Assembly: GCA_002104945.1 (NCBI GenBank)
Contig: MCFH01000059.1
Span: 124,001 to 188,000, forward strand
DNA: 64,000 bases
Direction of reading: 5' to 3'
Source: Piromyces finnis finn
Lineage: Eukaryota; Fungi; Neocallimastigomycota
The notes under the pieces are model-generated. The model was given only the letters and a program-made list of their open reading frames with translations, had not been told where the DNA came from and did no database searches. This document shows, in pieces, positions 35,633-60,455 of this stretch; position 1 is the stretch's first letter, and the number at the start of each line of letters is the position of its first letter. A program made the translations under genes and the position numbers.

Positions 35633-36481
35633 TTATTCTACATTTATATTTGAGTTAATGTAAGAATCATAAGAAAAATACATAATATTATAATAAGAAT
35701 TAATTACATTTATAATGTTATTATACATTACAACAGGATTATTTTCAGTGATATCACTAATTCTTTTATTAATATCATTAATGTCATATGGAATACCATA
35801 TTCACCAAGAAAAGATATAATCTTTTTATATATTGGTTTATCTTTAAGTGAATCAATCGATTTTAATGATACCTTTGCATACATATTTGATTGGAGATCT
35901 TCACCATACTTATTAACTTCAACATAATGTGTTGCCATATAATAGCTTTCCTTTTTATCTGAAGAAATATAATGAATAACAAATACTCCAGCTCCAAAAT
36001 AACCTGAAAATTCAGTAAAAAATAAAATGTAAGAATTGACAGAATTTGAAGTACTTTCAATTTTCAAAGGCCATTTAGTATTGATATTATAATCTAGTGG
36101 TAACTTATTTTGAGATATCCATTCATTTCCTAATAATACTGTATTAGCAATAATTTCATATTTGTATTTATTAGCAACCATTTTTATGTGTTCAGGTAAT
36201 GGTAACTTACCTTCAGAACGTAAATGTGTACCACAATAAACATGACCAGGAGTACACTTATTTTTGCAAGTAGTTTTATTCCTTTTGATTGCTATACAAG
36301 TATCATTAATGGAAAGTTTATTCATTTCTTTTATTGGTGGTTGATTACTAATTTCATTTTCTAAATTCTCAATTATACTTTCTTTTTTAATATCTAAATT
36401 ATAGCTATTATTGAAAACCTCTACAGCTTTATTAGTGATTTCATCAATAATCGTATTATAATATTTTTCTAAATTTTCCAT
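35633..36481 (-). CDS. Intronless protein with C-x9-C-C3H zinc finger (DUF5763-like pattern common in large DNA viruses)
   Basis: 282-aa ORF containing TCIAIKRNKTTCKNKCTPGHVYCGTHL. Confidence 0.65.
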   Translation of the reverse strand: MENLEKYYNTIIDEITNKAVEVFNNSYNLDIKKESIIENLENEISNQPPIKEMNKLSINDTCIAIKRNKTTCKNKCTPGHVYCGTHLRSEGKLPLPEHIKMVANKYKYEIIANTVLLGNEWISQNKLPLDYNINTKWPLKIESTSNSVNSYILFFTEFSGYFGAGVFVIHYISSDKKESYYMATHYVEVNKYGEDLQSNMYAKVSLKSIDSLKDKPIYKKIISFLGEYGIPYDINDINKRISDITENNPVVMYNNIINVINSYYNIMYFSYDSYINSNINVE

Positions 36482-37083
36482 TTTTTATTTTTTTTTATTT
36501 TTTTTTTACTAATTTATTTATACTTTTTAATTTTAGTTTTATATTTAATTTATATTAATATATTTGAAAAATAGAAAAATAAAAGAGAAAGAAAACAATA
36601 AAAGAATTATTTAATTATTTTTATATTAATATATAGAAAAATAAATATCATTTTAAGATATAAAATAATATAATTGGCGAATAAAAAATAAACTTTAATT
36701 TATATTACACATTGTTTTTCAATATAATTGATAATGAAAATGAAATTTCTGAAATATAAAGAAGCTTACTTCTATATTGAAAATTTTATTATTTATATTT
36801 ATATTTGTATTTGTATTTGTATATATATACATATGGATATATATATATAATTTTTAATTTTAAACTTTATACCTATTTTATTATTATATAATATAGAATA
36901 TAAACATTAAACTATTATTTTTTTTTAATAATATACTCTTCATTTTATAATAAAAAAAATAATAAACTTAAATTATTTAATTGATATTTATAATAATATT
37001 AAGTACCGTTATAATAGCTTTTATAATTCAATCTCCATGTAGAGGTAACTAGTTATATAGTTTAATATAGATTATGTCACAAA

Positions 37084-37205
37084 GAGCATTAATGCTGAAG
37101 AAATAGTAGGACAGGTCAGGAGGGCCAGCGCAACCAATGGAGATCATAATTTTGTTTCTTGATAAAATTTTGTTCTTTGGCTCTGTGTCCCATTGGAAGT
37201 CAAAT
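37084..37205 (+). mobile_element. Diverged fragment related to the 3' part of the SINE
   Basis: gagc..gctgaagaaa.agta.gacag..caggaggg.ca matches SINE positions 58033-58076, and both end in ggaagt followed by an A-rich tail. Confidence 0.65.
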
Positions 37206-37530
37206 ACAATTATTATACTTTAGTATAATAATCATGACTTTCTTATTTTAATTAAAATTACAAGAGTACATATACCCAATTTTTTATTCATTTGTATTTA
37301 TTTAAACATTTTTTTTTTATTTTTTATTTTTTATTTTTAATTTTTTATTACATGTATTATAATTTTAATTAAATTAATAATAAAGTTTAAAAATTTGATA
37401 CTGTAAAAAAAAGGATTATGCCATTGGTTCGAATCCGACTATTTACTTTTTTTATAAATTTATGTTTTAATTGAACAAACAGTTTAATAAATTATATATA
37501 ATATAAATATATATATATATATAAATAGAA

Positions 37531-57631: not shown

Positions 57632-58182
57632 GTCGTTCCAGTTTTTATCCTGGTTGTTAAGGCGTTTCCTTAGCATACATAAGGCTTCTGGTTCGACCCC
57701 GCAGATGTCAGTGCCTGTGGATTTTCCCACTGGGTTTGCCATGGGTTGGGTTATGATATTCAGGTAAGTATAAATGAACTTTCTAATTTACTACTATGAT
57801 AATAACACTCGTCTAGCCGGCCTGAGAGGGTCTAGTGTACATGGTACATTCCAAATTAGAACTTAATAAGTGGTGACTTAGGCTATGCCAAAAACACATA
57901 ATATTCCTTAATCAATTTAAGTGTAAACATTAGGGGGCGGTTGACACGTGATCAAATTGACTATAAGAGGCTTAGCATTGTAGTTGTGAAATATCGTACA
58001 ACGACATGCATCTAATGTACATGGATTAAGTGAGCGTCGAAGCTGAAGAAACAGTATGACAGACCAGGAGGGTCACAACCACCTAGCAATAGGAATGAGC
58101 CAACGTTTCTCTAAGAACCACCATTGGAGCTAACTCTGATCGATGGGAGAAATGCACTCGGAAGTTAAAAAAAAAAAAAAAA
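57632..58182 (+). mobile_element. tRNA-derived SINE, copy 2 (535-bp core + A16 tail), 10-12 bp TSD tgaaacagta(gt)
   Basis: TSD at 57622-57631 and 58183-58192. Head has D-arm-like GTTAAGGCG, a 5-bp stem with 7-nt loop (cctta-gcataca-taagg) and B-box GGTTCGACCCC. Appears identical to copy 1. Confidence 0.88.
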
Positions 58183-60158
58183 TGAAACAGTAGTTTTAAT
58201 TGTTTCTTCAATATTTATAAGATCATTAGAAAACTCTATATCTAAGCCATATTTTAAAGTTTTTTTATATAGATACTTAAACTATTTTTTTTCTTGTCTT
58301 GTACATTTATGTCAATCAAAATAATGTCTAAGAAAGGCTATTATTACTAATTTTATATATTAGAAAATTTATTAAATAAAAAAAAATAAATTAACGAAAT
58401 ATGGAATTAAATTTTAAAATCTATTATATACTTTAATAAAAGATTCAATATTTATATTTTATATTCTATATTCTATATTATATATAATATATTTATTTTT
58501 TACTTATACAGAAATAGAGGTATCATATTTTTATTGAAAGGTAGAAATAAATATTCAAAATATTATTATTAATATTTTTATATCTTATGTATTATATATA
58601 TATATGAAAGAGTATTAATAAAAATATATGAAAAATCAAATAATATTATACTCTATTTAATCTATACTGTTTATAATAAAACTCAGTTCTTAAATGTATT
58701 CAAAACAATTCATTTTACGGTATAGTATTTACGATATTCTTGAAATATATATATCTGATATAAAAATATTAAAATATTTTGACTTTATTAAGAAAAGTAG
58801 ATCTTATTCGAACTATTTAATTAAAAAAGGAGAAATCAATATAGTTATAATAGTTTACTTTTTTTAATAAAGCTTTATTAATACTATCTAAAGATAAATA
58901 ATAGTCATGGATTTTATTTTCTATTATCAATAAAAGCATATATTATTTGTATTGATTTTTTCAATGAAATTATCATTTGTAATTTCATTACTTTAAAAAT
59001 ACAACAGATGGTGATTTATTGAAAGATTATTTATATGAATTAAAATAATAAAAGAATATAGTGGTAGTAAATGTAGTTTCAGTCAAAATCTAGATTTCAA
59101 AGACAGGAGATGAATTGAATGAAACAAAGGTAGAAGGATTTTTTAAAAGTGATGATATTAACTAACTGGATATAATATTATTGGGAATTCATGAAAAAAC
59201 CCCGACTTTTATAAAGAAATAATAAAAAGATAATTCAAAGTCTAATATGACCTTATGCTAAACCTAAAATAGAATTTGATACAATTTTATAAGATTTTAT
59301 TTTTAGTAATGTTAGTAAAATTAACCATGTACATCAATATAGACTAGGACATACTAATTATTTCTTGTCCATATTAATAAAAAAAAAGATTTTATTAATA
59401 TAAACAAGAAATATATTTAAGTAGAAAAGTTCGGTAGCCATTTTGAAAAAAGGATAAATACTATATTTATGAAAAGTATGAAGTACCTTTTAATAAATAA
59501 AGAATAGTAAAAGATTTTTGAAAGAGAAATCTATACTAAATAATTTATTGAAAATAATAGTTTTATCTTAAAATATTTCAATGGAACAATGTTTCAATAT
59601 ACTAAGTAACTTTGTAAATTTAAAGCTTATTACGAAAGTATTGACAATGAATATACTTCAAATTTATAATTTATATGACGGAATGGTTGGCATTTATAAA
59701 ATATAAAGTTTTTATTTTGATAATTCAATCAAGGCTCAATCTCATGGTTAGAAGAAAACTTTTTGAAGCTTTACTACTATTATAAATATTCAAAGTTAAG
59801 ATTCACCAAAAAAAAAAAAAAAAATCCTCACTAAATGTAAAAAAAAAGCTGCACCGCTTTTTTAAACTTTTTTTTTTTTTACTCTTTACTTAAAAGTTTT
59901 TTTTTTTTTATAAAAATATATTTAATAAACTTTTTATTCTATTCTTTTTTTAATTTATTTTTTTGATTAAATTAATATATCATTTAACAAAAATTATATT
60001 AAAGCTATTTAAATTTAAATGACACTTTAATATATTAATAAAATTAAAAAAAAAAATATAAAAACAAAAAAAATTTTCTTTTTTTTTTTTTTTTTTTTTT
60101 TAGAATCTTCAATTTTTTTTTAAAAAAAAATAAAAACAAAATAGAATAAAAAAAAAAA

Positions 60159-60455
60159 ATGACTAAATTAACTGATGAAGAAATAGATGATTTTTTCATG
60201 AATTCACCTCTATTTGAAGAGGACAGAAAAAAAGAAAAAGAAGAAATAGAAAGGTTAGAAAAAATGTTGATTGGTAATGTAAATTGTCCTATCGTATGTA
60301 AAAGATGTAAAACAAAAAATATTGAATTGAGATCACTTCAAATTCGTCGTACTGACGAAGGTCCTACCTTAGTATATTATTGCATCAATTGTAATAAAAT
60401 AGCAGGTTTTCCTGGAAAGGAGAATGAAGATTTTGTAGAAGATTGGATTTATTAA
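60159..60455 (+). CDS. Minimal TFIIS C-terminal zinc-ribbon protein, NCLDV-type (TFIIS/RPB9-C family)
   Basis: 98 aa: CKRC...LQIRRTDEGPTLVYYCINC retains the acidic DE hairpin. In-frame stop 12 nt upstream of the ATG; no N-terminal zinc ribbon (unlike Rpb9/Rpc11/Rpa12) and no TFIIS domains I-II. Confidence 0.82.
   Translation: MTKLTDEEIDDFFMNSPLFEEDRKKEKEEIERLEKMLIGNVNCPIVCKRCKTKNIELRSLQIRRTDEGPTLVYYCINCNKIAGFPGKENEDFVEDWIY

Follow-up and report, generated by a model that had tools for sequence, protein, structure and literature searches.

A probable NCLDV-like element, recently integrated and right-truncated, in the chromosome of the gut fungus Piromyces finnis

Introduction

Among the gut fungi of herbivores, Neocallimastigomycota are the chief degraders of fibre, and to our knowledge they have not yet yielded a DNA virus isolate. 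The closest described system is that of the endogenous 'fundsalphaviruses' of fungi (Gong, Zhang & Han 2020, Virus Evol 6:veaa008; PMC7017919). The main text of that paper names P. finnis, A. robustus, Neocallimastix, Piromyces E2 and Pecoramyces as hosts, gives D5, a D6/D11 SNF2 helicase, a split Rpb1 and PolB as shared genes, and places PolB, RNAP and helicase with NCLDVs, near Pithovirus. A mini-TFIIS, a CCCH protein, lectin or dockerin cargo, an upstream motif and near-identity of copies were not found in that main text.

Two further systems are comparable. The VLEs of yeast and zygomycete killer plasmids have their own RNA polymerase and a D6/D11-type helicase (10.1101/2025.10.13.682091), known from pGKL2 as ORF4/YKP4. 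Mycodnaviridae of zoosporic fungi reach up to 350 kb and are related to Imitervirales and Algavirales; their hosts are Blastocladiomycota, Chytridiomycota and Zoopagomycota, with Neocallimastigomycota unmentioned (PMC13533422). They too are related to NCLDVs and have persisted in early-diverging fungi, in the form of both fossils and infections.

Here, we analysed 64,000 nucleotides of Piromyces finnis scaffold MCFH01000059.1 (hereafter the window). An original prediction made from the letters alone had proposed that a D6/D11-like helicase, a minimal TFIIS and a viral-style zinc finger form one dispersed giant-virus transcription set, either domesticated by the host or left by an endogenous virus of an undescribed lineage.

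Results

A truncated NCLDV-like element lies in a fungal chromosome

Positions 25409–42064 hold five ORFs on both strands. This block probably stems from recent integration of an NCLDV-like element of anaerobic gut fungi, one of the 'fundsalphavirus' lineage, and is truncated on its right side; the TFIIS further right would come from a divergent member of the same family. The left bound is provisional, whereas the right bound was set where homology to sister copies ends: by blastn, the sister copies L009 and L011 cover window positions 25673–42064, reaching the end of the compared sister locus sequence. Block synteny in the relatives L001, L005 and L006 is the same as in the window copy. The host species and the linkage of the helicase with PolB, D5 and split Rpb1, which is seen in relatives, match the fundsalphaviruses. 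The window copy itself lacks PolB, so that a PolB-seeded screen would miss it. The predicted NCLDV-like origin of genes now in a chromosome stands, but in the light of the main text of PMC7017919 the lineage is not undescribed.

The first ORF (25409–26854, plus strand, 481 aa) is 99.6% identical to its L009 counterpart and had no match in Pfam and PDB searches. It is followed on the same strand by a predicted secreted lectin-like cargo ORF of 2198 aa (27062–33658), homologous to a 1938-aa A. robustus gene and containing a signal peptide, Ser/Thr linkers, B-lectin and a faint ricin-B signal. What had been taken for a decayed ricin-B fragment is this faint ricin-B/B-lectin signal, which lies within an intact ORF of the same element. 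The third plus-strand ORF (34252–34971, 239 aa) has homologues in L001 (227 aa) and L005 (232 aa) and forms an exact cluster in P. finnis. The zinc-finger gene (35633–36481, minus strand) and the helicase gene (38421–41738, plus strand) complete the block. The window copy ends after the helicase and is without polymerase genes; tblastx and tblastn with all element genes of four relatives detected no remnants of PolB, Rpb1, D5 or the ∼270-aa and ∼730-aa genes in the rest of the window.

In the spacer between the zinc-finger and helicase genes lies a SINE-like host retroposon (37529–38092, minus strand, its poly-A tail appearing as a T-run on the plus strand), flanked by a 14-bp target-site duplication and matched by an empty site in L009. 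Identical copies occur elsewhere, and a second copy, recognized by sequence match and inverted relative to the first, is found 20 kb away in host DNA (57631–58182, plus strand). As predicted, host genes separate the helicase from the TFIIS: an ORF with CotH and CBM10 (fungal dockerin) domains by Pfam (42790–44148, plus strand), and a spliced aldo/keto reductase model of 300 aa from the public annotation (44691–51336, minus strand), for which exon-by-exon searches gave weak Pfam matches at 47521–47730 and 51031–51222. The origin of a further neighbour, an intronless ORF with four chitin-binding modules and Phage_lysozyme2 by Pfam (55134–56513, plus strand), is uncertain; its chitin-binding modules are ∼50% identical to those of the L001 and L006 cargo genes. 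An rDNA fragment, also claimed originally, was not recovered, as the window contains no rRNA or other Rfam family at E≤0.01.

The host retroposon inside the block and the spliced host flanks support that the NCLDV-like genes sit in a fungal chromosome. That viral DNA was misjoined to fungal DNA, by chimeric assembly or contamination, is highly improbable given this retroposon with its target-site duplication and its twin in host DNA, the occurrence of four copies on three scaffolds and an AT content that is equally extreme throughout. The public annotation joins the CotH-CBM10 ORF and the helicase into one 1543-aa model; these are two genes wrongly fused, which corrects the public gene model, and as a gene-model error the fusion is not evidence of assembly error.

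The helicase and zinc-finger genes form a divergent pair

All three genes of the original prediction are open and full length (38421–41738, 60159–60455 and 35633–36481). The helicase of 1105 aa contains ResIII/DEAD/Helicase_C/SNF2 domains by Pfam, and its sole significant match among solved structures is poxvirus NPH-I (D11; E=1.9e-18), with nothing else in the PDB reaching E≤1 except one low-complexity match. Motifs I (GxGKS), II (DExH), III (SAT) and VI (QxxGRxxR) are intact, and across 16 sequences, Tokyovirus among them, residues G59, G61, K62, D155, E156, T191, P192, Q568, R572 and R575 do not vary. A Marseilleviridae 'D6/D11-like helicase' cluster matched at 7.6e-16. Judged from these search matches, the protein appears to group with viral D6/D11 helicases more closely than with cellular ones of the SNF2/DEAD type. 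Both RecA lobes align with NPH-I and NCLDV D6/D11 helicases and the SF2 motifs are common to both; however, identity is 20–30% and confined to the motor, and the window protein has a matchless 500-residue C-terminal region and a long Asn/Asp-rich low-complexity insert of variable length. The NPH-I C-terminal domain (NPHI_C) was absent by Pfam, and the VETF small subunit (D6) was not among the PDB matches at E≤1.

The 282-aa protein, assigned by synteny, is a CCCH zinc-finger protein whose C-C-C-H set (C62, C72, C83 and H86) is invariant across 24 homologues, in agreement with the predicted zinc finger, even though its Pfam match falls under the cut-off. In the copies compared, its gene is always divergently paired with the helicase gene. 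A fold search with its AF2 model (mean pLDDT 73) returned nothing significant. The best viral fold matches, uncharacterised Pithovirus-MAG proteins at E 0.013 or weaker and TM ∼0.15, are a lead only.

Fuller relatives carry polymerase genes of their own

Relatives with conserved synteny were found on Logan contigs, on a JGI metagenome contig and in A. robustus; none of the contigs seemed human. In fuller copies, the lectin/dockerin cargo is followed by the 239-aa gene, the 282-aa zinc-finger gene (minus strand), the D6/D11 helicase gene (plus strand), a ∼270-aa gene, mini-TFIIS, a ∼730-aa gene, a C-terminal piece of Rpb1, PolB and the D5 primase-helicase. The block runs on in this way into mini-TFIIS, split Rpb1, Pol-delta-like PolB and D5 primase in A. 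robustus and the metagenome contigs. PolB of the relatives combines PF03104 (exo1) with PF00136 (DNA_pol_B), with D5_N adjoining and Rpb1_5 linked, and a 732-aa ORF had no match in PDB and Pfam. The element's own RNA polymerase genes adjoin the helicase in L001, L005 and L006. Together with an NPH-I-like helicase and a TFIIS cleavage factor, such a polymerase could transcribe the element from its own upstream motif, TAAAATGA, independently of host Pol II.

Of the NCLDV core, the relatives thus contain Rpb1, PolB and D5, but major capsid protein, A32 ATPase and other packaging genes were not seen in the 18–23 kb read of each (L001, L005 and L006). On this span, the element is a candidate virus that may instead be a capsid-less element. 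A plasmid- or transposon-like element without a capsid, related to the killer-plasmid VLEs instead of being a true nucleocytovirus, would fit the lack of a capsid gene in the parts read as well as the small apparent unit size, and VLEs likewise carry a D6/D11-type helicase, their own RNA polymerase and secreted carbohydrate-binding cargo, a likeness of description; the predicted secreted lectin, phospholipase-C and chitin-binding cargo of the gut-fungus element recalls toxin cargo. Yet in VLEs PolB is protein-primed, by way of a terminal protein, and D5 primase is absent, whereas here PolB is Pol-delta-like and accompanied by D5; the main text of PMC7017919 places PolB, RNAP and helicase with NCLDVs, and neither pGKL2 ORF4 nor any other VLE protein was among the named matches in any search. 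We therefore regard kinship with VLEs as unlikely and retain an NCLDV-like element as the best reading.

An octamer precedes most element genes

Starting from a k-mer count in the 100 bases upstream of each of 31 genes, we found TAAAATGA in sense orientation within 200 nt upstream of 24 of these 31 element genes, compared with 4.8% expected (P about 4e-26). Four window genes have it: the 2198-aa ORF (26999–27006, plus strand, 63 nt before the ORF), the 239-aa ORF (34116–34123, plus strand, 136 nt), the 282-aa ORF (36648–36655, minus strand, 174 nt) and the helicase ORF (38257–38264, plus strand, 164 nt). Across the window, TAAAATGA occurs at chance frequency (22 found versus 22.5 expected), so that position alone is non-random, and from this position we infer a candidate element promoter. 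It resembles the Mimivirus-type early promoter motif AAAATTGA (review PMC5294985) as a short A-rich octamer ending in TGA at most ∼150–200 nt upstream of many genes, but differs from it by one base in length, and its putative role is read from position only. A bacterial promoter scan was uninformative in the AT-rich DNA of the window.

The mini-TFIIS is not the partner of the window helicase

The lone mini-TFIIS gene (60159–60455, plus strand), at a distance of 18 kb from the helicase gene, encodes 98 aa, an N-terminal motif followed by one zinc ribbon, and is minimal and intact as predicted: Zn_ribbon_TFIIS matches at E=1.5e-10 (Pfam), with four Cys and a D-E hairpin, and C47, C50, C75, C78, D66 and E67 are invariant in the alignment. 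The Pfam match spans residues 46–80 only and PDB alignments cover the C-ribbon alone; neither search detected TFIIS domains I/II or an RPB9/RPA12 N-ribbon. TFIIS domain III and the C-ribbons of RPA12, RPB9 and RPC10 have the same four-Cys ribbon with an acidic hairpin that stimulates transcript cleavage. Unlike these cellular proteins, the window protein has its own N-terminal motif, found otherwise only in the element's 80–92-aa proteins.

Window and element TFIIS share this motif and are ∼69% identical in nucleotides and ∼50% in amino acids. The helicase block, by comparison, matches its sister copies at 99.5% identity, so the TFIIS is not the partner of the window helicase, and the three genes are not the single dispersed set that had been proposed, although the open frames and intact motifs on which that proposal was built did hold up. 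In a search of 1.84 billion proteins, its closest relatives were at most 51% identical, all named ones being from Neocallimastigomycota, and a word search returned only the query itself. No element genes lie beside it and a syntenic orthologue was not found, the lone A. robustus copy standing in a different host context with a zinc ribbon that looks damaged. By these comparisons the gene is probably a leftover of another and much more divergent member of this element family, the rest of which would have been lost nearby. A solo copy of the 282-aa gene (P0099, 45% identical) lies 20.6 kb to the right on the same scaffold; it was rejected as a partner of the TFIIS, as no other element genes surround it.

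Near-identical copies point to youth of the insertion

P. finnis contains at least four copies of the block, spread over three scaffolds, with ORFs 99.5–99.9% identical. Two of them lie in the same sense on MCFH01000083.1 at a spacing of 54,254 bp. The helicase is intact in three copies (1105, 1146 and 1180 aa) and broken in one by a frameshift, a stop and a retroposon insertion. Another copy has one stop in the lectin ORF, one frameshift in the 239-aa ORF, and one frameshift and one stop in the 481-aa ORF. In L010, a core that is 99% identical is combined with a different cargo gene, which indicates mosaic variation among the copies rather than plain segmental duplication.

The window copy differs from L009 by 23 synonymous and 21 non-synonymous changes, an excess over the expected synonymous share of 20–29% (P = 3e-6 to 1e-3). 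Mismatch divergence in intergenic DNA (1.0–1.4%) equals dS, and dN is 0.1–0.3%. The synonymous excess and the low dN relative to dS indicate that some selection acted on the coding sequence. This is better explained by a replicating element before separate integrations, although the data do not separate selection on the element from selection by the host. As only 3–6% of single-base changes create stops, at a dS of ∼0.01 an open 3.3-kb ORF is expected from youth alone. As polymerase genes are missing from the window copy, the open state of its helicase and zinc-finger ORFs is due to youth rather than host use; at most, fuller copies could drive their expression in trans.

These data bear on domestication, in which purifying selection by the host would maintain helicase, zinc finger and TFIIS as a functional transcription module. 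The intact ORFs and catalytic motifs of all three genes, the synonymous excess between copies and a TFIIS that is open while the rest of its element is unrecognisable nearby are all compatible with it. Nonetheless, near-identical copies, some with stops, frameshifts or an insertion, do not make a single maintained locus, youth already accounts for the long ORF, the TFIIS belongs elsewhere with only distant relatives and a non-syntenic, damaged-looking A. robustus copy, and the window offers no RNA polymerase gene for such a module to act on. Domestication, as originally favoured, is thus quite improbable, and a young, truncated insertion remains the preferred reading.

A still-active compact element (about 45–55 kb), episomal or latent, with the window copy as a recent integration by-product whose genes the element's polymerase reads in trans, is a possible though not the leading account. 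Near-identity and selection-like divergence of the copies, mosaic cargo, the same-sense pair and retention of TAAAATGA before four window genes would fit it, as would intact, gene-dense contigs of 33–53 kb in several sequencing runs and metagenomes, and many Neocallimastix copies on 41–75 kb contigs. However, contig sizes may reflect repeat-limited assembly, L001, a contig of 42 kb, ends inside a gene, and the parts read hold no capsid genes. Somewhat more tentatively still, gut fungi may carry a currently replicating, nucleocytovirus-derived element, unusually compact at about 45–55 kb, with its own polymerases, a TAAAATGA promoter code, swappable secreted lectin/phospholipase/dockerin cargo and repeated, possibly tandem, integration; if so, it would be an intermediate between giant viruses and fungal killer plasmids.

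By itself, the window adds one more copy to an endogenous lineage that is already published, and it is no demonstration of domestication. Comparison brought out near-identical intact copies, an element-specific upstream motif and cargo with fungal dockerins, and these three features make a live small NCLDV-like element testable from existing RNA-seq, raw reads and metagenomes. Short gene calls in the sister copies were also considered as degraded helicases, a reading that we rejected because the raw ORFs show two intact helicases.

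The helicase block is an endogenous nucleocytovirus-like element

The original prediction had placed a D6/D11-like helicase, a minimal TFIIS and a viral-style zinc-finger gene in the window, and all three ORFs are open, at 38421–41738 (+ strand, 1105 aa), 60159–60455 (+, 98 aa) and 35633–36481 (−, 282 aa), respectively. Domain searches of the 1105-aa ORF returned ResIII, DEAD, Helicase_C and SNF2. When compared with all solved structures, the protein matched poxvirus NPH-I (D11) over both motor lobes (E=1.9e-18), its sole match besides a low-complexity hit. A cluster containing the Tokyovirus 'D6/D11-like helicase' and a Marseillevirus helicase matched the ORF at 7.6e-16, and motifs I, II, III and VI were invariant between it and the cluster sequences in an alignment. 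Together, the NPH-I match, the Marseilleviridae cluster match and the invariant motifs confirm the D6/D11 call; as judged from sequence, the window helicase is nearer the D11 side of this group. The two helicase lobes are separated by a low-complexity, Asn/Asp-rich insert at residues ~300–390 (window 39300–39600). Probably through a modelling error, the public annotation merges the helicase ORF with an adjoining CotH-dockerin ORF into a single 1543-aa model (38421–44148), and for that reason the 1105-aa helicase is absent from the protein collection.

The closest helicase (70% identity) was found on gene-dense Logan contigs of up to ~42 kb, and further relatives on a 33-kb JGI metagenome contig and a 120-kb A. 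robustus scaffold. In all of these loci the genes come in one order. A large gene for a secreted cargo protein is followed by the 282-aa gene, which lies on the other strand, and then by the helicase, a ~270-aa gene, TFIIS (80–92 aa), a ~730-aa gene, a domain-5 protein of Rpb1 that matches archaeal A'' and the C-terminal portion of Rpb1, a Pol-delta-like family-B polymerase and a D5_N primase-helicase. The helicase block is thus an endogenous nucleocytovirus-like element. Its lineage, which the original prediction had suggested might be undescribed, was reported by Gong, Zhang & Han in 2020 as endogenous 'fundsalphaviruses' of P. finnis, A. robustus, Neocallimastix, Piromyces E2 and Pecoramyces, with shared genes including D5, the D6/D11 helicase and a split Rpb1, and a PolB near that of Pithovirus (PMC7017919). 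Neocallimastigomycota lie outside the scope of the Mycodnaviridae paper (PMC13533422). PolB, the Rpb1 piece and D5 accompany the helicase in relatives, but the window copy lacks every polymerase gene.

Sister copies are mosaic and the window copy is truncated

By blastn, window 25673–42064 matched two loci on MCFH01000083.1 (L009 and L011), and part of it matched one locus on MCFH01000077.1 (L010). The ORFs of the window copy are 99.5–99.9% identical to those of these sister copies, with dS ~0.01. Homology ends at 42064, 326 bp past the helicase stop codon, while the sister copies continue rightward with a 279-aa gene, TFIIS and a 732-aa ORF; the window copy is thus cut short on its right side.

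A 564-bp retroposon-like repeat (37529–38092), carrying a poly-A tail and flanked by a 14-bp target-site duplication, separates the 282-aa gene from the helicase. L009 has an empty site at this position, and an identical copy of the SINE-like retroposon (~560 bp) lies at 57631–58182. These observations show that the block is chromosomal and rule out an assembly artefact. Two more copies are present in L010; because copies are 100% identical, the retroposon must have been active very recently in P. finnis. One of the L010 copies interrupts the helicase there, which is further broken by a single frameshift and a single stop. The window (1105 aa), L009 (1146 aa) and L011 (1180 aa) each keep an intact helicase ORF, and their lengths differ through in-frame changes in the Asn/Asp-rich insert. 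Other genes of L011 are damaged: a single stop interrupts its lectin ORF, the 239-aa ORF is frameshifted once, and what is present of the 481-aa ORF contains one frameshift as well as one stop. In L010, a 99%-identical core is joined to a different cargo gene, of the ricin-B/PI-PLC/CBM10 type seen in the metagenome contig, so that the copies are mosaic variants rather than plain segmental duplicates. L009 and L011 share one orientation and are separated by 54,254 bp, a spacing close to the size of the largest related metagenome contig (52.8 kb), which suggests tandem units of a ~50-kb element.

The cargo gene of the window copy (27062–33658, +) is an intact, intronless 2198-aa ORF. Its product has a signal peptide, a B-lectin domain and Ser/Thr linkers, and weakly matches two lectin-like bacteriocins, putidacin and pyocin L1. 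What had been taken for a decayed ricin-B fragment is a faint match within this intact ORF. Related elements instead carry ricin-B, PI-PLC-X and CBM10 cargo, or chitin-binding cargo. The 282-aa ORF gave a CCCH zinc-finger match below threshold only; C62, C72, C83 and H86 are invariant across 24 homologues. Its AlphaFold model (mean pLDDT 73) had no significant match in the PDB or a viral structure library.

A sequence motif precedes the element genes

A sense copy of TAAAATGA is located within 200 nt upstream of the start codon (45–200 nt) in 24 of 31 element genes of relatives, the loci listed being the window, L001 (Logan contig), L005 (JGI metagenome contig), L006 (A. robustus scaffold) and L009. 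The expectation from motif density is 4.8% (P about 4e-26). Four antisense copies fall in these upstream stretches, and the opening 200 nt of the ORFs are free of sense copies. In the window, TAAAATGA precedes the lectin ORF (26999, +), the 239-aa ORF (34116, +), the 282-aa ORF (36648, −) and the helicase (38257, +), and is absent upstream of TFIIS, the 481-aa ORF and the host genes. As the total count across the window is at chance level, the signal is positional. TAAAATGA is close to AAAATTGA, the early motif of mimivirus, and similar to the AAAAT element of iridoviruses (PMC5294985). From its placement in the sequence, we infer that TAAAATGA is a candidate element-specific promoter, which would be read by the polymerase that the element itself encodes, assisted by the helicase and TFIIS.

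Selection acted while the copies diverged

Across the five ORFs, the window copy and L009 differ by 23 synonymous and 21 non-synonymous changes, where 20–29% synonymous would be expected under neutrality, depending on transition bias (P 3e-6 to 1e-3). Intergenic mismatch divergence, at 1.0–1.4% stretch by stretch, about equals dS, and dN is 0.1–0.3%. The synonymous excess, and a dN below both dS and intergenic divergence, indicate that selection on the coding sequence acted while the copies diverged. The original prediction had attributed such selection to domestication. This dN/dS comparison between copies upholds the selection, but we found no evidence for domestication, and the selection would be the element's rather than the host's. 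The simplest reading would be selection in a replicating element followed by separate recent integrations, since some sister copies are broken, the core is mosaic and, at this low divergence, only 3–6% of single-base changes would make a stop.

TFIIS is a divergent single gene among host genes

The 98-aa ORF was correctly called a minimal TFIIS: it matches the zinc ribbon of TFIIS at E=1.5e-10, including its four Cys and D-E hairpin, lacks every other TFIIS domain and shares the N-terminal motif of the element family. However, its protein identity with the TFIIS of L001, L005 and the P. finnis sister copy is only 49–50% (about 69% for the DNA), against 99.5–99.9% for the ORFs of the helicase block and its sister copies, which argues against a single dispersed toolkit. 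A word search for its relatives returned the query itself only. Searching 1.84 billion representative proteins gave 29 matches at E≤0.001, and even the best of them do not exceed 51% identity. Those top matches that carry a name come from Anaeromyces and Neocallimastix, and two of these adjoin helicase genes. No other element genes were detectable elsewhere in the window. A. robustus has a lone TFIIS too, which is flanked by unrelated host genes and whose ribbon appears damaged. On the window's own scaffold, 20.6 kb to the right of TFIIS, is a solo, open 285-aa gene 45% identical to the 282-aa gene (L012:10001–10858, window-equivalent about 81.0–81.9 kb), with no other element gene within 10 kb. 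Thus, besides the young block, the scaffold bears old, scattered single genes of divergent relatives. The open TFIIS ORF may have been kept by selection, or may have been inserted late from a divergent element.

The scaffold, MCFH01000059.1 of assembly GCA_002104945.1, is 323,665 bp long (window coordinate = record coordinate − 124,000), and the window is extremely AT-rich (GC 14–38%). No Rfam family, rRNA included, was found in it at E≤0.01, so the claimed rDNA fragment was not recovered, and a tRNA search of the window found none. An intronless 923-aa ankyrin-repeat ORF lies in its left part (6706–9477); ankyrin-repeat genes are frequent in giant viruses, and no link between this ORF and the element was found. 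Host genes do separate the helicase from TFIIS, as proposed: the CotH ORF, which includes a fungal dockerin of the CBM10 type, and a spliced model for an aldo/keto reductase (searched exon by exon, each exon singly). An intronless chitin-binding lysozyme ORF (55134–56513) lies in the same interval. It comprises four chitin-binding modules and a Phage_lysozyme2 domain, and the annotation breaks it up into models of 115 aa and 64 aa. Similar chitin-binding modules occur in cargo genes of the element, and the ORF may be of either host or element origin.
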